The notes under the pieces are model-generated. The model had not been told where the DNA came from and did not search any database. It saw only the letters and a program-made list of their open reading frames with translations. Positions 4,031 through 18,091 of a DNA stretch of 18,091 nt are shown here, piece after piece. A program made the position numbers and the translations under genes. Source of the stretch: Ginkgo biloba (taxonomy: Eukaryota; Plantae; Ginkgophyta); assembly GCA_024626585.2 (NCBI GenBank), contig JANKJI020000002.1, positions 140,631,243 to 140,649,333 of the forward strand, written 5' to 3'. Every line of letters begins with the position of its first letter. Position 1 is the first letter of the stretch.

Positions 4031-7000
4031 TTTAAAATATGAAATGTTAAATTATATTAACCCTCAGTGGGTTCGTCCTCACTATTGGAGGGCCATACAT
4101 AAGATTTACCATTAATATTTTATTTTATATATTGGGACACTGCCCCTGCATTCATGAGTTGCCTCTCTGTCACTGAATCTACTCATCATCAACACATGAT
4201 AAAACTCACATAGCCATCCTCTTTGATTACCTCTCTCGATGATCTGTCTATATCCTCATCCTCTACTTGGAAAAATTCACCTTTGCCCCTTTTTAGTTGG
4301 CCTCAATACTACGGCAGAATCATCCATCATCCATAGAATATTGACTGCCTCTATCAGTGGTTCTGTCAATCTTTAAGTGCCTCTAACACCAAATATCTCA
4401 GTTAGCTATTACTCCTTGGTAAAATTCTTCATCGTTGACATCCTCTNNNNNNNNNNNNNNNNNNNNNNNNNNNNNNNNNNNNNNNNNNNNNNNNNNNNNN
4501 NNNNNNNNNNNNNNNNNNNNNNNNNNNNNNNNNNNNNNNNNNNNNNCTTATATGTATTTTAACATAAGAAATTAAAATATATTTATGTGCAAGAAATTAT
4601 GGAGAAGTAAATATTTATATTAATAAAACTACTGAAGGTACAATGGCGCTAATGGCTCTTAATATCTAAAAAATATCTAATTGAGAAGATATATTTGTCC
4701 TCTAATTTTTAATGAATAAATTCATCTTCTACTACGTATACAATCATTCTCTTGCAAGTATCTTGGTCTTGTCCATATTCATGGCTTTATAAATTAGTAA
4801 GATTTTATGATTAGTAAGTGATTTTATCAGATTAGAAAAAATAAAAGCTTCATGAACTTATTTAGTAAAAAGCTATCTAGGATAAAGATAAAAGATTATC
4901 TTAACCCATATCTTAATAAAAACTAATTTAATAAATTTAAAGAAAACACTATATAAGAAAAGACAAAAGATTTACCCTGATTTTTTTAGCAAAAACTAAT
5001 TTTCTCAATTTAGTATAAAGTTATTTAGAAAGAAGAACAAAGCCTATTCTAATTATTTTTAGCAAAATGAGATAGCTATCAATAACTAATTAATTTATCT
5101 CACTTATTTTTTACAATGAAATAAGTAGGGAATAAAGACTAGCTAGCCTCTTTATATAAGGGTGCTTCATGTAACTTTGGGCACATCAAGAAACTACCCA
5201 AATATGTGCGATTCAACGTTTTAGGTCAAAGTTATTTGACATCTTTATTTTTTATATAAAGTTCATATGGGCTAAGACATTAGTTCTATAGTAGTTTGTT
5301 ACTAATATATTAGCCATAAGTTCATGAATCTCTGCAATAAAGTCTTTTTGCAAATACTACTCTTAGGAAAAAGATAACTACTTTATAAGGTTGAGAATGA
5401 AATCCTTAGTATTAAGATAATGCCAAGTGAACAAATTTAAAAAAAAAAAAAAATTATGTTCCTCTTTAGATTTATGTNNNNNNNNNNNNNNNNNNNNNNN
5501 NNNNNNNNNNNNNNNNNNNACCCTCTGCTCTTTTAAGAAAGATCTTTGAGGAGGGTGATATGAGGTCAAGTGAGTCTAATTTTGTGTAGACATCATTATT
5601 CAAATGTATGAAATAAGACTTGTGAGATATATAATTTATTCCTCCTTAAAATGTATCTCTTTTGTTCACATATTATTCTCTCCACTCTTTTAAAATTTAT
5701 CATTGAAGAAGTTGATATGAGATATTGTTCTCTCCACTCTTTTGGCATGATTATACAAGACCCATGAGATATACAAAAAAATTCTATTATTTAGGAGGTA
5801 AAGATGTTTTGTGCTCATATGAATCTTTAAATAAATTTGATTACATATCATCTCACAAATTTAATTAAATGAGAGCTTTGTAACTTCCTTAAAGCATCTT
5901 ACAAGTTTCTTTTAAAAAAACTAGAAAAACCCTTATCATTTAACCATATTTAGTTGACTTAGCTCATTAGATCTTTTCTAAAAATGTAGTGAGAAATGAC
6001 AAATAAGCTTCATAAAAGTTAGTCCAACTACTTAATTTATAAGCATTAGTAAGTTGCCTTAAAAATATTAAGCTAATATTAGAACTCTTATTTATTAAAA
6101 GAATATGCAAAGTGTTTGGAATAGTAGAGAAAAGTACTACTTTTTAGCCTATAGTTATCACATGTATTTTTATCTCTTCTTTCATATCAGGGACTTTAGA
6201 TTTATGCCTTACATTTTTTAATTCTTTTTTATAAAATTAATAGCATCTATAATTTTTTCTCTAAGTCCTTTTAATTATTCCCATTTTAAAAAACATATGG
6301 TATATACACACTTATTAAAAATCTATTGCTTCTTAAATCATATATGAAAGCAATGATTGGGCAGCTTGATGGCCATTAGTCTTATTCTTTTGNNNNNNNN
6401 NNNNNNNNNNNNNNATTTTTATTCTTAGAATAATGTGCAGAGTTACAAAAGATTATTATATCTTAAATCATACCTTAAAGTAATGGGAAAAAGAGGCAAG
6501 CAATGACTCACCACTAAATTGCTCTCATTTTTAGAGATATACTACATGGTAAATAACAAACAAATTTTATACATGGTAAAAAGTACTGTAAGCAAATATG
6601 TATTTGTCATAAGAAATTATTTGTTTTGGAATTACTTCAAATAGAGCCATGTGGTGAAGAGTCCTTGCCTTGAGTTGTNNNNNNNNNNNNNNNNNNNNNN
6701 NNNNNNNNNNNNNNNNNNNNNNNNNNNNNNNNNNNNNNNNNNNNNNNNNNNNNNNNNNNNNNNNNNNNNNNNNNNNNNAGTTGTTTTTCATCTAAGAGGA
6801 AAAAAATTATTTCATATTAATAATATATTTGCAAATAAATGCTCTTAGATATTCGCAAATAAATACACTTTAAAAAACAAAATTGATGACACGTTTCCAA
6901 AGCTCCTCGAGAGAATACTTGAAAGTGATTCATATCCATAAAATTTGCATGGACATGAAAGAATTTTGAGAATAAACTATTAACAAGTTTGTTTTAGCAT

Positions 7001-7116
7001 TTTTTATTCTCNNNNNNNNNNNNNNNNNNNNNATGTACAAATGATGTTGAAGCGATGGCATAAATAACACGAGGAAATGACGTTTCTACTATTTGGTGAA
7101 TTTATTAAGCAATATT

Positions 7117-7166
7117 ATCCCACATTGACAAATATTACGAGCATTCACAATGAAAGTACTATAAAA
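7117..7166 (+). promoter_or_regulatory. Plant Pol II snRNA promoter: USE plus TATA box
   Basis: ATCCCACATTG (7117-7127; consensus RTCCCACATCG) and TATAAAA (7160-7166) are separated by 32 nt. This is the Pol II spacing; Pol III snRNA genes have about 10 nt less. TATA starts 32 nt upstream of U4 +1. Confidence 0.93.
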
Positions 7167-7191
7167 TTAAAAGCCTAGGCATTATAGAGGT

Positions 7192-7343
7192 ATCTTTGCG
7201 CTTGGGGCAATGACGCAGCTAGTGAGGTAAAACCGAGGCGCGTCAATTGCTGGTTGAAAACTATTTCCAAACCCCCTCTTCGGCCTTGGTTCATCCTTGG
7301 CCGTAGAGAATTTTTGAAAGGCCCGCCATTTGGTTCGGGCCTC
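7192..7343 (+). ncRNA. U4: U4 spliceosomal snRNA
   Basis: Begins ATCTTTGCGCTTGGGGCAATGACGCAGCT, the plant U4 5' end and U6 stem II partner. Has the 5' K-turn stem-loop (GTGAGG-TAAAA-CCGAGGCGCGTC), TGCTGGTT (U6 stem I partner), GAAAACTATTTCCAAACCCCCTC, central stem-loop GGCC...GGCC, Sm site AATTTTTG and 3' hairpin AGGCCCG...CGGGCCT. Length about 152 nt with a proper promoter. Confidence 0.97.
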
Positions 7344-7357
7344 AAAACCAATTTTAA
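7343..7357 (+). terminator. Possible degenerate snRNA 3' box
   Basis: CA-AAACCA-ATTTTAA vs plant consensus CA(N3-10)AGTNNAA: one mismatch, at the conserved G. Confidence 0.35.
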
Positions 7358-7798
7358 AACTAAATTAGGGATTTCTAAGCAACATTGCCTAAAAAGAGTG
7401 CATCTGTGTGTTGTGGCAGGGGCTATTGTGCAAGTCCAGGTCTGGACAAAGGTTAAGGGACAAGTATTGATTCGTAAGTGATTGAGATTAGCCAAAAACT
7501 GTTTGTGGTTCCGTGTTAATATTTAAGGTTTTAGTGTCTTTTGGTAATTGTTGATATGTTCGAGGTATCTCTTTTAGTTGTAGCCTTTGTTTTTGTCGTG
7601 TTAATGGTTGATTTTCCTTCATATTTCTGTCCCCAAAAGGTGCGTTTCATTGAAAATATGGATGTTCACTTTAATGCGCGAGATCACTTTCATGGGTGTT
7701 GTATATTTGGCATCAACGTCAATGGGCTATTGTGTTTCACAGATGTTTGATTGTTCCCGTTTTTAAGCTTATTATCGGGTGAGTGTTCTTCTAGATTT

Positions 7799-8235
7799 CT
7801 GGTATAATTATTGAGGTGAAATCAAAGGTGTTCCACCTTTGGCTTCTGAATCGTTACCAGCGCACAAGTTAAATATGCATGATTATACAGGCTTTTGCCG
7901 CTGTTCGCATCATTCTTTATGGAGTGAAGGGCGATTGTCAATCTTCGTGAGGGCAGCTTGATAGTCCTGTGGGGGATCTTTGCCCATATTGCTTGGGAAC
8001 ATTGGGGTGGATGGGTTAAATTTCTCTCCTCATTCTTCTGCCCTCAGAGTTGGTGCAGAATGGAATAATTTAGGGAGGGGGAAGGGAGCAGTTGCACAAG
8101 TTGAGTCATTTTTGTGAATGTTGATTGCTGGGGAGCCTTACTATTTGATCTGATCTTTTCTGAAGCGGTCTTCAGACTTGACAAGCCAGATTAGTCAACA
8201 TTGGCCTGCCTTCGGTTCAGAATCCGTAGCATGGA
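7799..8235 (+). ncRNA. Candidate structured non-coding RNA of unknown family
   Basis: Consecutive helices: CTGGTA/TACCAG enclosing CAAAGGTG/CACCTTTG; ACAGG/CCTGT plus GCTGTTC/GGGCAGC closing a 3-way junction; GCCCAT/ATGGGT; TTCTGC/GCAGAA; CACAAG/TTTGTG; AATGTTGATT/AGTCAACATT enclosing CTGG/CCAG and TCTGAAG/CTTCAGA; TCCGT/ATGGA. No long ORF. Visibly more GC-rich than the flanks. Confidence 0.45.
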
Positions 8236-8265
8236 ATATCCGTAAGTAAACCCTCTAATTTCATA

Positions 8266-8352
8266 CCTTGCGAAAGTATATACTTCCATGAACTGAAAAT
8301 TTGGTTCCTTGCGAAAGTATATACTTCCATGAAGTGAATATTTGGTTCCTTG
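8266..8352. repeat. Tandem repeat, 41-bp unit, about 2.1 copies, with internal palindrome
   Basis: CCTTGCGAAAGTATATACTTCCATGAA(C/G)TGAA(A/T)ATTTGGTT at 8266 and 8307, with CCTTG again at 8348. Each unit contains the perfect palindrome AAGTATATACTT. Confidence 0.9.
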
Positions 8353-8370
8353 AAGTTTTATTAGGGTACA

Positions 8371-8989
8371 CTAGTCCTGCCAGTAGCAAATTATTTGCCA
8401 CGGGCAGTCCTCCCCCGCCCACCCCGTGCCCTGCCCGCCCTCCGCTCTTTGCCCCAGTGCCCCTATCCACCCTCCGCAGTAAATGACGGCACGGGGAGGG
8501 GTGCGGGGAGTAAATGAAGACCACATGGCCCTCATTTACTCTCCACACCCTCTCTCGAGGGCGGCAGGGAGTCCCCCCGTCCACGCCCTCTCCCNNNNNN
8601 NNNNNNNNNNNNNNNNNNNNNNNNNNNNNNNNNNNNNNNNNNNNNNNNNNNNNNNNNNNNNNNNNNNNNNNNNNNNNNNNNNNNNNNNNNNNNNCGGCGC
8701 CCTCCCGGTGCTCTCTCACTGGCGCCCTCTCCGTCCCCTATTACGCTGATGTCCCCTCTCATGATGCCATATCTCATCGGTGACCTCTTGTCAGTCCCGT
8801 CCCCTCTCTCGTTGGTGTCCTTTCTTTCGTTGGCCCCCTCTCCGTCCCCCCCTCCCGCACACAAAGGAGGTAAATGGCCCTCATTTACTCCTCGTACCCC
8901 CTCCTATATTACAAAAAAAAATGTAACTCCGTGACAGGAATTTCTCTCTCCTGTCACGGTTTTGTGTTGTTTTTTAGTAATATAGTATA
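8371..8989 (-). mobile_element. Non-autonomous Helitron-like element (GC-rich, multiple internal inverted repeats)
   Basis: The minus strand starts TTATACTATATTACTAAAAAA (like Helitron 5' TCTATACTA..., though the TC itself is missing). It ends GCCCGTGGCAAATAATTTGCTACTGGCAGGA-CTAG|T, a subterminal hairpin plus CTAG before T. GC content shifts sharply relative to the flanks. Confidence 0.6.
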
Positions 8990-9282
8990 AGGGTACATTA
9001 GGGTACATTAGAAAGATCCAAGTCATAGTAAATTAGGGGAGGAATGACTTCTTCAATTTAGGCTTGGTTGGNNNNNNNNNNNNNNNNNNNNNNNNNNNNN
9101 NNGTTGTTAAGTTACATTTTGATGACGTTTTTAGTATGGATATAGCACTTCAATTGATGTTTTAGAATAAATGAATTACACGTGTCAACATGAATTTACA
9201 CCATGTTGCACTTATAAATGGTAGCCTTTGCGCCGACTTATTGATGGTGGTGTGATATCAAAAGAATATTATGATATCATGG

Positions 9283-9453
9283 GACTAATGGTTTAAGCTT
9301 CATTGCAAGCACCAAGGGAAATTTAACTACTTGCTAGTTAAATAGACTAATGGCTTAAGCTTCATTGCAAGCACCAAGGGGAATTTAACTACTTGGTAGT
9401 TAAATAGACTAATGGCTTAAGTTTTATTGCAAGCACTAGAGGGGCATTTAATT
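9283..9453. repeat. Tandem repeat, 62-bp unit, about 2.7 copies
   Basis: GACTAATGG(T/C)TTAAGCTTCATTGCAAGCACCAAGGG... starts at 9283, 9345 and 9407. The full units contain the hairpin ATTTAACTAC-TTG-(C/G)TAGTTAAAT. Confidence 0.92.
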
Positions 9454-10343
9454 GCAGAGTACTTTAATATTAATATTTGAATTCATTCTATGTTTTATTA
9501 TTGCAAAGAATTGTTAATTTATTCTTTAGATAAAAATTGTAGAGCTATAAGCTATAACATAGGTTGAATGCTAACGATTATCTTTTATGATGGCTATGAG
9601 AATTTAGAAGTTAGATTAGAGCATCTAACATTTAGAAATGTTAGAAGAGAATTTGAGATTTAATTTTATCATTANNNNNNNNNNNNNNNNNNNNNNNNNN
9701 NNNNNNNNNNNNNNNNNNNNNNNNNNNNNATGCCCATTTTACATTGTAGAAGTGTAATTGATAATTTATAATTGATTTGTGGGGTTTAAATTTGTGTTGT
9801 CCTGAAAATAATGATCATTATTTGCTTAAATGTTAATTCCATGATTTAGATTAGGGTTTATTGTGTAAATTTGAGAGGCAATAAATCAAACTAAGTGTTG
9901 TACCTATTGGACTTTAACTTAGAATTTCGCCCTTTTTTGAGCAAGGATAATTAACAAATGANNNNNNNNNNNNNNNNNNAAAACATCCTCTTTATCATGT
10001 TCCCAATAAATAAGGTGTTTAAAATTGTCCTTAGTAGGAAGATCCCATGGAGGGGGCTTTTGAATTTTTTTTAATGGTTGCTATTGAGAAAAATTTAGTT
10101 GCATAAAATTATATCAGCAAATTTGATCAGGTACGTGTGGATTAGACAATGCTCATAACTCACAGTGAAGTCTAGGCCCCCCTCTTCAGCGGTTGTTAGA
10201 AATGAATTATCAAAGTAGTTGGAGCTTTGTGTTTTATGGAAGAGATTATGATTCTTTTTTGTAGATTCAAATTTTTGGTTCATGGGACCTTTGATTCTTG
10301 ATAATTAGAAGCCTAGTGGTCTCCATGGGACCTTCTTGTAAGA

Positions 10344-10397
10344 GACAACTTTAAAGATAAGGATCTTGACTAAGTGACAACTTTAAAGATAAGCATC
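10344..10397. repeat. Short direct repeat, 32-bp period
   Basis: GACAACTTTAAAGATAAG(G/C)ATC at 10344 and 10376. Confidence 0.8.
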
Positions 10398-11693
10398 ACA
10401 ATTGTGTTATATAACTAGTGTGGTTACTTTTCTAGTTTGGGTTTGCAAAAACGGATAGTATCTCAAAATATTGTAGGATTAGTACTCGATATTAAGGCAT
10501 TTGCTAGTGCCTTGTGTGGATGATTAAAGTGGAGTGTGTATCTTTGTAATATTAGATTTGTTTTCTTAAAGAACTAAGGTCTCGTCTTTAAAATTTTTAG
10601 GCATTCAATTTTATTTGAGCACACGGAGAAGAAAACCCCTCTTTTGAATAAGGTTAGTTTAATTTGATTTTGTGTCGTCGCTTTGACATTCTAGAGAAGG
10701 GCATCTCACAAATTATTGAATGTAGTATTTTGCACCAAAGCATTATGAATACATANNNNNNNNNNNNNNCCATTGATAGCGATTACATATGAAACTCTAA
10801 TATTGGTGGTGTTGTGCACTTGTGCCTGCAAGAACCAATGTCTTTGTGATCTCATAATAATTATTCAAGCGCTTGTGAATCTTTCTGTTGTAATTGTTGA
10901 TAGATGAATGTGCAATAATCAAGCTTATTGTCCATTGGATTTAATTTGTTTTTGTTATAGAGGTTTTGATTAGTTTGAGATCNNNNNNNNNNNNNNNNNN
11001 NNNNNNNNNNNNNNNNNNNNNNNNNNNNNNNNNNNNNNNNNNNNNNNNNNNNNNNNNNNNNNNNNNNNNNNNNNNNNNNNNNNNNNNNNNNNNNNNNNNN
11101 NNNNNNNNNNNNNNNNNNNNNNNNNNNNNNNNNNNNNNNNNNNNNNNNNNNNNNNNNNNNNNNNNNNNNNNNNNNNNNNNNNNNNNNNNNNNNNNNNNNN
11201 NNNNNNNNNNCCCAGTCGTTTGCTTATGCAAGCTTTGTTTTAAGGTTTTGATAAACATTTTTCCATGATTTTCTAACCACTCTGTCAACTTGTTAATTAA
11301 CATAGTATATTCTTTAATCATGCCCACATATACGAGTTGCCATTATAATGTGTGATAGTAATGTGTTGTAGTGACCTACATTACATATGGCCTGGGCCTA
11401 ACTCTGAAACCCTAAGTTTATGCTTTCTATTATGCCATTCAAGTTTTTGTAAATCCTTAAGTGAAAATTGTTAATTGAGTAGCACTAGGAATGAGTTGTT
11501 AGTGAAAATTGCTTGTTAGTTACCTTAAGGTTTCATTATTGAAATCACCACTATAATGAAATGATTACTANNNNNNNNNNCCCTTTACTTATTAAATGTT
11601 GGATTATAAAATTTGTATGGTGAATGAGTCTTTAATATATAATGCCATTCAAAACTAATATTTTGAAGATCTTGTAAGAAACAAAATCATGTT

Positions 11694-11858
11694 TTTCTTC
11701 TTGTCCTTTTGCAAGGATAGTGGATTGGATCGATTCAAATATAAACAATTATTTTCTGACATTTAATGACATTTCTTCTTGTTCTTTCATAAGGATAGTG
11801 GATTGGATCGATTAAAAAATAAGCAATTTATTTTACGACATTAGAATGACATTTCTTT
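11694..11858. repeat. Tandem duplication, about 78-bp unit, 2 copies
   Basis: AAGGATAGTGGATTGGATCGATT at 11713 and 11791. The flanking TTTCTTCTTGT and GACATT...AATGACATTTCTT are also duplicated. Confidence 0.9.
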
Positions 11859-12373
11859 CCATTTTTCTAATGNNNNNNNNNNNNNNNNNNNNNNNNNNNN
11901 NNTTGTCATCAATAATTCATTGGCATTGGTTTGATTCACCTTATTACCACGTGGTGCAATCTTTAGTATTTATTATTACTAGATCTTCATATGCAAATCA
12001 CTAGGTGGTAGGTTGGTTCCTTGTATTTTGGTGGAGGGTTATGAAACAAGTGCATATTTAGGATTAGTTTCGATAATGAATTAATATAGCATATTCTTTT
12101 AGAATGATAAGAACTTTAGAATTTGTTTGTAAGTAGTTGTAGTGTGGTGAAAATGTGGAAGTGTTTACAAATTTTAAAATAATTTTTATGGAAGTTTTTA
12201 TAATTTTTAAAACAATTTCTATGTATTAAAAGGAAGAAGGTTGAAGTGTTTGAATTGGTGATATAGGAATAAAGGTGAAATGCATCATTCGAATCATTTA
12301 TGAAGATATAGAAAGTATGGTAGAATCATTTATGTAATTACAACTCCAAAATTCATTCATTTCATCCATGTAA

Positions 12374-12405
12374 TCTATACTAATATACTAAAAAATTGCC
12401 ATGTC
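12374..12405 (+). mobile_element. Helitron-like 5' terminus
   Basis: A|TCTATACTAATATACTAAAAAATTGCCATGTC matches the typical plant Helitron 5' end (TC after a host A) and resembles the 5' end of the 8371-8989 element. The 3' end was not found; it may lie in the N-run at 13280-13379. Confidence 0.45.
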
Positions 12406-12776
12406 TGCCCCCCTTCCCCCTTAAAAAATGAAATAAAAAAAAAAAATCGGGTCCAGATTCGCATGGACAAAGAGAATGAAAATAAAAATAAAAGAATTAA
12501 AAAAATGGTGCATGCCAAGAGCGATGTAATGAATGCAATCTCTAGATTTTTCTCGCATTACTAAATGGAAAGGGCCAAGTGTGGGATTCGACCTTATTAC
12601 TAATTTCCATATTGATGCCCATATTGTTGATTTTCAAGTGCAAACCACAAATGGATATGAAAAATGTTTTGGATTGAGTGAGTTTTGAACCCCAACCATT
12701 TTTAAAATTATTTTTTAATTACAACTTGGTTCTTAATTCTAGCCATGGTTTAAATTTTCCAATATTAATGGTCGTC

Positions 12777-12851
12777 TCAGAGGTTTACAACTATGGCGTG
12801 CTACTTCTGGAGCTAATGACGAATAATAAACCCACTAAAGATTTATTTGGA
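12777..12851 (+). pseudogene. Receptor-like protein kinase fragment (subdomain IX)
   Basis: Translates SEVYNYGVLLLELMTNNKPTKDLFG vs the RLK consensus SDVYSYGVxLLELxTGKKPTDxxF. The conserved D and G are substituted, and no other kinase subdomains are nearby. Confidence 0.8.
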
Positions 12852-13047
12852 AGGGTTAGAAAATGTTTTCTTGGTAAAGCCCAAAGTATGATCGATTAAA
12901 TTCTTCAGTCGACAGATGTAGCTTTGATTTGCACTACTGAAGCGGTGAGGACAATGTGAAATAGGATTTGATGAAATCTAGGGTTTTGTATTAGGATACA
13001 TGAAATTGTAGTCTAGCAGGAGTATCAGAAGTAAAGAGGAGGAAACA

Positions 13048-13212
13048 ATGAGTTACAGAAAGTTCAAGCATCCCAAGTATGGCTCGCTAGGATAAATGAT
13101 GTCAGTGGAGAAGAAATCTAATCTTCCTCTCTCTGTTACATGCCATGAATTGATTCAGTGAATGACATGCAAGATAATGACTTTAATGGTCTACAAGCCC
13201 AGCATGACCCAT
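13048..13212 (+). pseudogene. RPL3: 60S ribosomal protein L3 (uL3) N-terminal pseudogene fragment
   Basis: MSYRKFKHPKYGSLG* vs plant RPL3 MSHRKFEHPRHGSLG. In the same frame, codons 41-55 read CKIMTLMVYKPSMTH vs CK(F/L)TAF(M/L)GYKAGMTH. In-frame stops at codons 16 and 38. A telo-box TAGGGTTT lies upstream at 12979-12986. Confidence 0.88.
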
Positions 13213-13524
13213 AAGCCTAAATCCAGTAAGCATTTTTTATTCTCTTTTCTTTTTTTTTTTTTTTTCTAGCCAATTGTCGNNNNNNNNNNNNNNNNNNNNN
13301 NNNNNNNNNNNNNNNNNNNNNNNNNNNNNNNNNNNNNNNNNNNNNNNNNNNNNNNNNNNNNNNNNNNNNNNNNNNNNNNTTTGTGCTCTTGACTAGCCTT
13401 GGTAAACCCAAGGGAGTAACTATTCAAGTTATACCACTTTGATGATGATATAATTCTAAGTCATCCAATGTAATTTGGTTTAATTGTTCCAAGTGATCAT
13501 ATACAATTCAAATGGTATGGGATA

Positions 13525-14165
13525 ATTTAAAAGAGCCTTTTAAATATAGATTTTCATTTGTTAATCATTTATTAAAATATTGATAAAATTTAGTAAAGTA
13601 GCAATATTGGACATAATTTACTTTTCCTTAGTTCCATTACATGTCCTTATGTAATTAAAAGTATAAATAGGTTACAGTCATAAGACATACACAAGTTATA
13701 AAAAACATAAGAAACATTGTAGATATCAAACCATGAGTGCTATAACTGACAAAACCACTTTCTTAAGCTTTAATTATTACTTTCCAACATAGAGAGACCA
13801 AGTTCTTGGAATCTCCTCTTAAAAAGTTATAGCTCTTAATTATTTGGTTAAGGTATGTATAAACTAATTATGAAAGACTTGAATCTAGAATTGATTTGAT
13901 ATCAAATAACCTTGGATCAAAATACTAATCCAAAAACCTGTTACAATTTTATCACAACATATGTTTTACATACAAAATAAAGTAAGTAAAGGGGAGAAGT
14001 CTTTTCACCGATGCTTTGGGATCAATATAGTACATGTGGCATCTGCGAATTTAAGGTTCACTAATTAATTTGTTTCAATAATGCCTTGCTCTTTACCATA
14101 TATAATATACAAAAAGAAACGTGATATATTTTTGATAGGATGAACTATAACAATCAATTGACTCT
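13525..14165 (+). mobile_element. Possible heavily degraded hAT transposase C-terminal region
   Basis: FHRCFGINIVHVASA (VASA at 14036-14047), then with a frameshift FT.L...NNALLFT. This echoes the hAT dimerisation motif YRILLTIPVTVASAERSFSKLKLIKNYLRST. Weak, with many stops. Confidence 0.3.
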
Positions 14166-16150
14166 CACATGGCCAAAGACTATTATTAGAGTTGCAAGTG
14201 TAAATCTTTTGAGATCTAATGTGCATTATTTCACACAACTCGCACAAATCTCGGAAGTGACTACCAATAAGAGTGATAGTGATTGACTAATATATTCAAC
14301 TTTAATGTGGCATAAAAATGACTAGACAATCACTCAATTCTTATAAGGGGGATTTAGATGAAAATTTTCCTTTTTTCTTACAATCTAGATGTATGGACAC
14401 ACAAATTTCGATGTTATAATTATTATCATGAGGAGTCTATAGCATGCTACCTATGTTGAGCAAGTGTCTTGATGGGTTACATCCAACGTAACTTCATGCT
14501 ACCAAAGCTTCCACCCACTTGCATACCATTTTGCAGACACAGTAAAAAGGAGACAACCAAATCATACGGGCGATATGCAATAACCCACTATATAATACGA
14601 CGATAATCTATCCACTTTGTTCTAAAAAAGGTGCGAGGGTAAGATAAAAAGCCAACATACTCTAAAGTGATGATAATGCTCTTACTATACTTTTTCCAAG
14701 GATGATATCAAGCTAATTGATATCATTCTCTAGGGAAAAAAATAAGATATCAAGAAAATTGATTGCCACATGGTATAAAGGTAAGGCTACACTTTCTTCG
14801 AAAAGAAGAAAACTTTATACTTTTAAGAGTACTAATGTTATAAATATTCAAGCTTATCAATAAATAGTGTATATTCGAACTAAATCAACGATGTTACGGG
14901 CTTGGAATGCTTTTGCTTTTGTCCATTGCCAAGCTAAGATGACAACTACTTGTACATTGTTAGTCATATTATACATTGTTAGTGAACTATCCCCTACAAC
15001 ATTATTCATGCCTTTGATGGCTGTCCGTAACAAACCGGCCCACTTCTACCATGTATGCTTATATTGCGCCACGTGACAGAAAAATTCCGTCAATCAAATC
15101 GATGGAAATTGATTAATGTCTATTCACTAAATCTGATCGTTCATCCGTCTTTCTTCGCACGGATTATGTAATGTTTACAGCATCATTTTTTCCGTCGTTA
15201 AGAAACAGCTCGGCGTACTAATATTCCCACGTATACGCCTTTTATGTATGTAGCTTTCCAATGCGTATTTCATTCACGCACGACAAAAAAAAAAAAAAAA
15301 ACGGATAAAACAAGCCCATGGGTAACATTAGGATGTGGATATGTTTTGTTTTTGGTGGAATCAATTAAACATGCTATTCAAGTTGCATTTTCTTTTAACA
15401 AACAAAAAATACAATCGTGTCAGCGTGTGACCTCGGCTTTGGATTCTTGTCCACATGGGCACACCAAAGAGACTTTAGGAGTGAAGAAACAAAAGAGTAC
15501 TTTGATTCTTAATGTGTCTCTGCCCTACTATTAAAAGAGTTAAGNNNNNNNNNNNNNNNNNNNNNNNNNNNNNNNNNNNNNNNNNNNNNNNNNNNNNNNN
15601 NNNNNNNNNNNNNNNNNNNNNNNNNNNNNNNNNNNNNNNNNNNNTTAATAAGATAGAGTAAACTCATGTTATAGTGCTTTAGCTTCAAGAAATAGTGCAA
15701 AGGCACATGGAAAAAATACACGATCATAATTTCAAAGGTTTACACTTTCAAGAAGGATATTTGGTTATCCTATTTGATAGTAAATTCAAGAATATGAAAT
15801 AAAATCTCAAGAAGCAGTGGCTTAGCCCCTATGTCTTGTCTGAACTACATGAGAATGGTTTTGCCAATTTAGCAAAGTTATTTGGAGAGGTTATTCTTAA
15901 TCTAATTAACGACTCCCTCTTAAAACTATTCATAACATGATCTTTAATCCAAGTTATATAATTATAACATATTGTAAATAATCATAAGGAATGGCCCTAT
16001 CAACAAGGATGGTCTAATTCCTTAATTTTATCTTTTAACCATGCATTAGTGCCACACTATGATATTTCAAAAGGTAGAAAATATTTTTGACTAAGTGTCA
16101 AGTCACAACTTCTAAATGTTTCACTAAATATCCTAAAAATATAAATCTAA

Positions 16151-16525
16151 ACACCATTCTATGATAGTGAAACCTTGTGACCAATCGCATGCAATATATC
16201 ACTTACAAAATCAAAGGGTGCAAGTCGCACTTTAAGTTAAGAAATGGATACCATCATGCAATGGTGTAATTTTTTGATCATTCACATGTAATATATCATT
16301 AGTACAATCAAAGGGAATAAAAAACACCCCCAAATAATAGAAACCATCCTATAATGGCACAACCTTATGATGGATCGCACATAATCTATCACTTACACAA
16401 TCTAAGATGCAAGCTACACCAAGTAACTTACAAACTAGAATATGGATACCATCATGTTATGGTGTAATCTTATGACTGATCATATGTAATATATCACTTT
16501 CATAAACAAAGCACACAGGTTGCAT
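16151..16525. repeat. Degenerate tandem array, 4 units of about 93-105 bp in A-B-A-B order
   Basis: Units start near 16151, 16248, 16341 and 16446, sharing ACCAT...T(G/A)TGA..ATC.CA...AAT.TATCA. GGATACCATCATG..ATGGTGTAAT occurs only in units 2 and 4 (16246, 16444). Confidence 0.8.
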
Positions 16526-17795
16526 TCCTCACATAAATGGAGAAACATTATGATCCACAACTAAGTGCAACATCTAATTGTATAAAAACATATCTTAATA
16601 TAAATGGCATGATGAAGGAATCTCACCTATTGTTTAGCTACAAACCTAGGCAAAAACATAAGGGTTAGATAGTAGAATCAATTCATCCAATAATTGTCAC
16701 GTAATAGGGGAAGTTTTCCCTTCACAGAAGGATTAATATTCTAAAAGTAATTTTAGGTCTCAAGAATCTTATACATATCATGCATTTATGATAGGATGTG
16801 ACAAGGTGTTAACAATGATGGCAGAGGATGTGCTGATGAGTCATCAAAGAAAGAACCCATAATAGAAGTGACCCTCATTAAATCCAAATTACATGATGTG
16901 GTATCCATCCTTAATGCATCATGTATGAACCATGCCTTCAAGATAATTTCTAAAGATCACTTATCATTTGTTGATATGAAACTAGATGAGAAGGAATGAG
17001 TAGAATATTGTGCTTCTTTAACAAACCCATATTAAAAAATAAAATTCACAAAGTCTATATAAATATATCAAGAGATGTTAGTTGTACATAAGTTATCTAC
17101 AATAAATATCTCTTCATATATTTTGTAAGAATCTAAGTATTTATCCTTTAAGTGATCAAAGAAACCACAATCCTTACCATGGAGATTTATCCCATACTCA
17201 ATGTTGATGATATAATTCCTCAAGGATTTGGTAAATGTTCTTGGGAATCTTGTAACATAGATTGTGGGCACTAGCTCACACCCACTCAAGTTTCAATCCA
17301 GCGAGTCACATAGAGGAATTAAGCATATAGAATATTCTTGATCCCTAGGATAGTGCACCACACCAACCTGGTGAAGGAAATCATCCATGTTATGAATCCT
17401 AATGAGTTTTATATGGAAAAAAGGCCCATCATATTTGATACTAACTTAGTAGAAAGACTATTCAGTATCCCCAATGTGGGTGAATTGATCAATTTAGAAT
17501 AAGAGAAAATATGGTTTAAGAGGCACAAGAAGGATATGGCCCTCGATATTCCAAAGGAGGACCTAATCGATGTCAATCCCAACACACTTATTAAGGTTGA
17601 CTTGTCCATGATCATTGAAGGTACATATAAAGCACTTTCCATAAGCATCCTTAGGCTCACATGATCCTCTAATATTAATCGTATCTCAGTTAAATAGATG
17701 AGGATCATTATAAAATCATCCAGTATAGAAGAATGCTACGTCTTCCCATAGCGCTTCTATTCATCCATCATTTAGAGCTTCCTATAACACCTCTA

Positions 17796-17900
17796 TTTGA
17801 CCTTCCTTCAGGTAGTATCAACTAGATGGAGGGCACTATTGGTAGTCGTTTGACCTTTAAGCGGTAGCAACTAGACGGAGGGTGCCATTGGTAGCTATTT
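17796..17900. repeat. Degenerate tandem duplication, about 50-bp unit
   Basis: TTTGACCTT...GGTAG...CAACTAGA(T/C)GGAGGG...ATTGGTAG occurs twice (CAACTAGA at 17819 and 17868). Confidence 0.75.
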
Positions 17901-18091
17901 AGTTATGAATTTAGAATATGATAAACTTAATGGTGGAGGGATACTATCCCATCCATTCAAGAAGGCTCTCATGAGCTCTCCAATTTGGAAGGATGTAGAG
18001 GAACTCATCACTATGGAGAGGAGGTCGAATTTGTTAGGTGAGCCCCTTCTAAAGGTTACATTAGAGAAAAATCAAGTTTTTAAGGAAGAAA

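Follow-up and report, generated by a model that had tools for sequence, protein, structure and literature searches.

In plants, the 3' box of snRNA genes follows the consensus CA(N)3-10AGTNNAA, and its mutation lowers cleavage by the DSP1/CPSF73-I complex (PMC5079582). Transcription of the Arabidopsis U1a and U2.3 genes proceeds beyond this box (PMC5079582), and extended snRNA transcription in this plant can reach downstream genes (Fukudome 2017, in the form in which PMC6670113 cites it). Another plant RNA with an snRNA-type promoter, the telomerase RNA of land plants, has a USE, a TATA box and a terminator of its own, is about 240-260 nt long and carries a template such as CTAAACCCT (PMC6765143).

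The window (the whole stretch of DNA analysed here, 18,091 nt) is AT-rich, plant-like DNA of about 27% GC that contains a single Rfam match above the gathering score, a U4 snRNA gene (RF00015, 110.4 bits). The features of this locus are the following:

7117-7127, + strand: USE of the plant snRNA promoter (ATCCCACATTG), the sole match in the window
7160-7166, + strand: TATA box (TATAAAA), 32 nt upstream of the U4 start
7192-7340, + strand: full-length U4 snRNA gene (Rfam RF00015), with its Sm site at 7309
7341-7361, + strand: zone where the 3' box is expected, containing no AGT; another U4 copy, from run X13, aligns up to 7361
7341-8260, + strand: putative read-through island, 40% GC, G/U-rich, CHG-retaining and non-coding, recognised by its composition and by a contig of run X2 (7249-8415)
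7655-8235, + strand: interval singled out in the preliminary description; ordinary folding, with stems 7799-7860, 7823-7841 and 8159-8176 well populated
8257-8338, no strand assigned: tandem duplication with a period of 41 nt at the island's far end, from a repeat search
8371-8989, - strand: multi-copy, Helitron-like repeat with a hairpin and a CTAG end followed by T, apparently crossed by the read-through
8695-12420, presumably + strand: weaker, patchy contig coverage, taken as the read-through tail

The gap between the USE and the TATA box is 32 nt, and this spacing is of the Pol II type among plant snRNA promoters. Both elements stand upstream of U4 and on its strand, as read-through from an snRNA gene would have it. 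The preliminary description of this DNA had placed a densely structured, non-coding RNA candidate just behind the U4 gene, without a promoter of its own and perhaps driven by that of U4. The position and the dependence on U4 are supported: the interval 7655-8235 lies directly 3' of U4, starting 315 nt behind it; the only USE in the window is that of U4; and an unspliced contig joins the region to U4, upstream of which no coverage attributable to this locus is seen. The dense structure does not hold up. The reading that we favour, and regard as probable, is that the interval forms the central part of an unspliced, unstructured, non-coding 3' extension of U4, produced by Pol II read-through, and that this extension is most likely an RNA without a structure-based function.

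Transcription was assessed in public runs that are only guessed to be RNA, none being recorded as such, and whose contigs carry no strand, ends or levels; within these limits, 45-100% of the words of 7345-8260 are present in 14 runs from 8 studies. Four runs (X2, X8, X9 and X13) were mapped as contigs on 7034-13030. X2 yielded one unspliced contig of 1168 nt and depth 19.7 that starts within U4 at 7249 and ends at 8415, with further pieces at depth 4-7 up to 11709 and zero depth at 11834-12233; X9 contributed a contig at 7238-7514 that spans the U4 3' end, X8 covers 7791-8428 plus pieces to 12420, and X13 covers 7669-8091. Together, X8, X9 and X13 account for parts of 7597-8428. The U4 3' end is crossed by the X2 and X9 contigs, which come from runs guessed to be RNA and hold no strand or single-molecule information. 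On the upstream side, depth is zero at 7034-7233 in X8 and X9 (a control of just about 160 nt), and the depth seen there in X13 is fully accounted for by another copy of U4; in X2 the mapped stretch is overrun solely at its 3' end, no contig crossing the upstream one. Because coverage starts in U4, fades with distance and has gaps, it fits RNA better than DNA carry-over, from which we infer that it reflects RNA and that the transcription of the region behind U4 is probably real. The other U4 copy, represented by an X13 contig, likewise extends about 300 nt beyond U4. The U4 part of the window copy in X2 is at most about 240, as against about 4000 for other U4 copies, a rough bound that would suit either one functional copy out of many or a copy given mainly to read-through. 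Over 7034-13030 the four runs showed no GT..AG joint, although contigs lose rare forms and may thus miss minor splicing; X2 and X13 read straight through the candidate intron 7779-7890 without splicing. Splicing at 7779, 7890 and 8242 was also considered and rejected, no such joints being present in the contigs.

The 3' flank of U4 (7341-7361) contains neither CA(N)3-10AGTNNAA nor any AGT. In a comparison set of 53 distinct USE-bearing plant U4 loci from metagenome contigs, AGT occurs in the 3' box zone of 45 and the strict box in 28. The strict box is also absent from U4 loci with the USE TCCCACCTCG and from locus L029, whose U4 has a 3' stem resembling that of the window U4, and the published consensus therefore misses some plant lineages. 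Since the missing AGT is not unique to this locus, its lineage may rely on a different box with normal cleavage, so that the absence need not be a lesion and may be a lineage trait. The U4 3' flanks concerned here are those of L013, L020, L055, L086, L091 and L029.

The stems listed in the preliminary description do exist (ten of them pair at the positions given there), and the terminal hairpin TCCGT/ATGGA at 8223-8235 is present in the MFE structure. Their sum is not a dense structure: the MFE z of U4 is -2.57, whereas 7655-8235 has -0.08, 7799-8235 has +0.37 and 7341-8260 has +1.16; the minus strand gives -1.11. None of the 26 windows of 70 nt inside 7655-8235 falls below z -2 (best -1.89, mean +0.14), a level passed by 6% of the 704 control windows of this size taken elsewhere. 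The folding z is thus near 0 at all scales, a result that had been set beforehand as refuting structure. Three stems only are well populated in the ensemble, namely 7823-7841 (0.99), 8159-8176 (0.89) and 7799-7860 (0.81); the closing stems of the proposed three-way junction have a pair probability of 0.00, stem 7982/8016 reaches 0.01-0.05 and the remaining listed stems 0.2-0.6, with an ensemble diversity of 159. The many G-U pairs, which had been read as evidence for a + strand RNA, are a matter of composition, as the pairing probability of random bases is 0.42 on the + strand and 0.32 on the - strand; the + strand contains 26% G and 35% U, and a strand rich in G and U gives many short G-U stems. 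There is some excess of short pairings, with 295 stems of at least 5 bp (G-U included) versus 246±15 by chance and 5 perfect stems of at least 7 bp versus 1.4. Under shuffling of 30-50 nt blocks, which preserves local purine/pyrimidine patches, this excess shrinks to p values of 0.01-0.06 in an interval whose borders were drawn around the stems, and none of the equal-size control windows matched the excess of stems of at least 5 bp. Given that choice of borders, and since no energy is gained, the excess is left as a weak, unexplained residue. The interval 7655-8235 folds no better than shuffled sequence, and its reading as a structured RNA is not supported.

The composition of the island offers another view of these stems. 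CHG o/e is 0.95 in the roughly 0.9 kb behind U4, as compared with 0.30 in the flanks (p 6e-7), a retention of the kind that unmethylated DNA would show, and CpG o/e is 0.55. With a GC skew of +0.21 and an AT skew of -0.20, the island falls 2.5-3 sd outside 29 other U4 flanks, and the bias of T over A and of G over C starts at U4 and persists to about 12.2 kb. Judged from base composition, the island would owe its character to long-standing low methylation together with a transcription-linked strand bias, which would make the sequence G/U-rich and, therefore, full of short stems. The skews point to a cause that is older than leaky termination, and more stable, which speaks against a simple read-through.

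As the preliminary description held, the region belongs to no recognised RNA family and has no long ORF. A permissive Rfam search of 7341-8420 gave a best E of 0.61, far below gathering; neither tRNA nor tmRNA was found, and the only Sm site near the interval is that of U4. A snoRNA cluster was rejected (no box C in 7000-8420 and no Rfam snoRNA match), as was a telomerase RNA, given the lack of a second USE, ten internal runs of T4+, a transcript of more than 1 kb and an unsuitable template: for a template of at least one repeat plus one base, among the usual telomere types, the island offers only AAACCCT (7 nt) at 8248. The 57 open frames of at least 35 aa in 7341-18091 include no real Pfam match, and among proteins of similar length none is homologous to the ORF that comes first behind U4 (64 aa, starting at 7556). 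This frame (7556-7750, + strand) is opened by the first AUG after the 6-codon uORF of U4 and has a hydrophobic start; it is probably a by-product of the U-rich sequence. A coding exon or pseudogene was also discarded, there being no Pfam match in the tested frames, no homologue of the 64-aa ORF and no tblastn match in the fetched loci, and no protein remnant appears in any frame. Nothing similar to the island was found behind U4 in 120 metagenome loci, mostly plant U4 genes, which also contain no diverged homologue of it, nor was a second copy seen in the window. The sole contig under another organism label (7669-8091) is 100% identical over 423 nt. The best hairpin has no exact match in viral contigs and none in plasmids, collections that are barely informative on plants.

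In the favoured reading of a U4 3' extension, Pol II would start at the USE/TATA promoter of U4, and some transcripts would escape 3' cleavage by DSP1/CPSF73-I, the missing AGT core of the 3' box possibly favouring this escape. To judge from the contigs, these presumed + strand transcripts would continue for no less than 1.07 kb and die away within the following 3-4 kb. The active promoter may keep about 0.9 kb unmethylated, preserving C and G, and long-term transcription may yield the G/U-rich strand bias, two steps suggested by composition. Short G-U stems would then compete with one another and define no fold, and the extended pre-U4 would be trimmed or degraded.

The compositional footprint likewise makes the strongest case for a rival, an old and stable transcription unit that would have U4 as first exon, either of a downstream gene or of a polyadenylated lncRNA, and the interval as 5' exon or intron region, a switch from snRNA to downstream gene that has a precedent in Arabidopsis (Fukudome 2017, through its citation in PMC6670113). 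Such a unit would account for the skew (T>A and G>C, as far as about 12.2 kb), which resembles that of introns, for the CHG retained in the island, for the splice-like signals (donors GTGAGT at 7779 and GTAAGT at 8242, acceptors ending at 7742 and 7890) and for the U4-joined contig of X9, which is not accompanied by a high U4 signal, as would be the case in a poly(A) library. We consider it unlikely, however, because the four runs show no GT..AG joint over 7034-13030 and span 7779-7890 unspliced (X2 and X13), none of the 57 frames in 7341-18091 has a real Pfam match, and the 64-aa ORF at 7556 has no homologue of similar length. Quite improbable is the related idea that a long-lived lncRNA, possibly polyadenylated, takes both its promoter and its first exon from this U4 copy and keeps, at 7799-8235, a loose fold that is under selection; if true, a wild-type plant would constitutively produce a chimera of snRNA and lncRNA.

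Some real lncRNAs show weak folding z, and a functional structured domain at 7799-8235, processed from the U4 read-through or carried on it as a protein scaffold, could appeal to this, to the existence of the listed stems, to the modest excess of short stems (unmatched for those of at least 5 bp by equal-size controls) and to a region that appears to be transcribed and unmethylated. We nevertheless judge it very improbable: z is about 0, ensemble diversity is 159 and the junction probability is 0.00, Rfam has no match for it, box C and USE are missing, U4 holds the only Sm match nearby, nothing similar stands behind U4 in the 120 metagenome loci, and the contigs, which cannot show ends, give no sign that the domain has its own. 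Distinctly unlikely, too, is the absence of any link to U4, that is, DNA carried over in the runs, or the remains of a decayed or captured gene, lying behind U4 by chance. The guessed type of the runs speaks for it, as do the captured-looking kinase and RPL3 scraps and the Helitron-like repeat in the window; on the other hand, coverage begins within U4, declines and has empty stretches, unlike that of uniform DNA, no frame holds a protein remnant, the window has no second copy, and CHG is undepleted, unlike in the flanking debris. The U4 read-through extension is retained as the best explanation.

Several other elements were observed in the window. The repeat at 8371-8989 (- strand), which we take to be Helitron-like from the features of its termini, has a short hairpin about 11 nt before the CTAG end (followed by T) on one side and TATACTATATTA on the other, contains internal inverted repeats and has many other copies among the run contigs; AGGGTACA flanks it at either end, with a repeat at 8990-9009. 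The segment 12560-13095 (+ strand) begins with a broken receptor-like-kinase fragment, whose match to the BRI1 type is weak (E 0.015), and goes on with codons 1-15 of ribosomal protein L3 (E 0.11, 7/7 matches uL3); it has other copies, about 90% alike, among the run contigs and looks like transposon-captured gene scraps. Beyond the mapped stretch, an N gap is immediately preceded by a long pyrimidine/T tract ending in CTAG (13230-13270), perhaps a 3' splice site or the tail of a retro-element. Short tandem duplications occur at 8257-8338 (41 nt), 9283-9451 (62 nt), 11694-11857 (78 nt), 12156-12223 (33 nt) and 16147-16511 (about 95-100 nt), and a MITE-like pair of 35-nt inverted repeats, 268 nt apart, at 10018-10052 and 10321-10355, where loose contig ends near 10300-10333 suggest other copies. 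Outside the Helitron-like repeat, the strongest local folds in 70-nt windows are at 14661-14750 (z -6.2) and 17061-17130 (z -5.6).

Compared with the telomerase RNA of land plants (PMC6765143), the island shares the character of a plant lncRNA in an snRNA-type promoter setting, absent from the Rfam matches and with the near-template AAACCCT at 8248; unlike that RNA, it lacks a USE and TATA box of its own, exceeds 1 kb, contains ten T4+ runs, at which Pol III would terminate, and has its near-template at the far end and in a form that differs from CTAAACCCT. It also resembles the unmethylated regions found near expressed plant genes (10.1101/2020.05.21.109744), being a CG- and CHG-retaining island by an active promoter in a repeat-rich genome, with the difference that its low methylation is deduced from CHG o/e. 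With the fusions of snRNAs to downstream genes (Fukudome et al. 2017, as far as PMC6670113 relates them) it has in common a long transcript putatively driven by an snRNA promoter and splice-like signals, whereas neither a spliced joint nor a downstream protein-coding gene was found in the window, only the kinase and RPL3 scraps. Were the extension a stable, conserved lncRNA, an snRNA promoter would here be giving rise to a new gene. There is a likeness, too, to the 3'-extended pre-snRNAs of the DSP1-CPSF73-I pathway in Arabidopsis (PMC5079582): in both cases, a Pol II snRNA gene with USE and TATA box is transcribed, or appears to be, beyond the snRNA end, and a weak or mutated 3' box, to which that of the window U4 can be likened, leaves, or here would leave, an uncleaved, extended RNA. 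The present case differs in coming from unselected public runs, in exceeding 1 kb and in the absence of the canonical 3' box. Since read-through is already on record for plant Pol II snRNA genes, the significance of the finding is judged to be small; its modest interest lies in a natural U4 locus without a canonical 3' box, an extension of more than 1 kb seen across independent studies and an apparently old compositional footprint, so that the locus could help to ask how lineages without an AGT box end their snRNAs.
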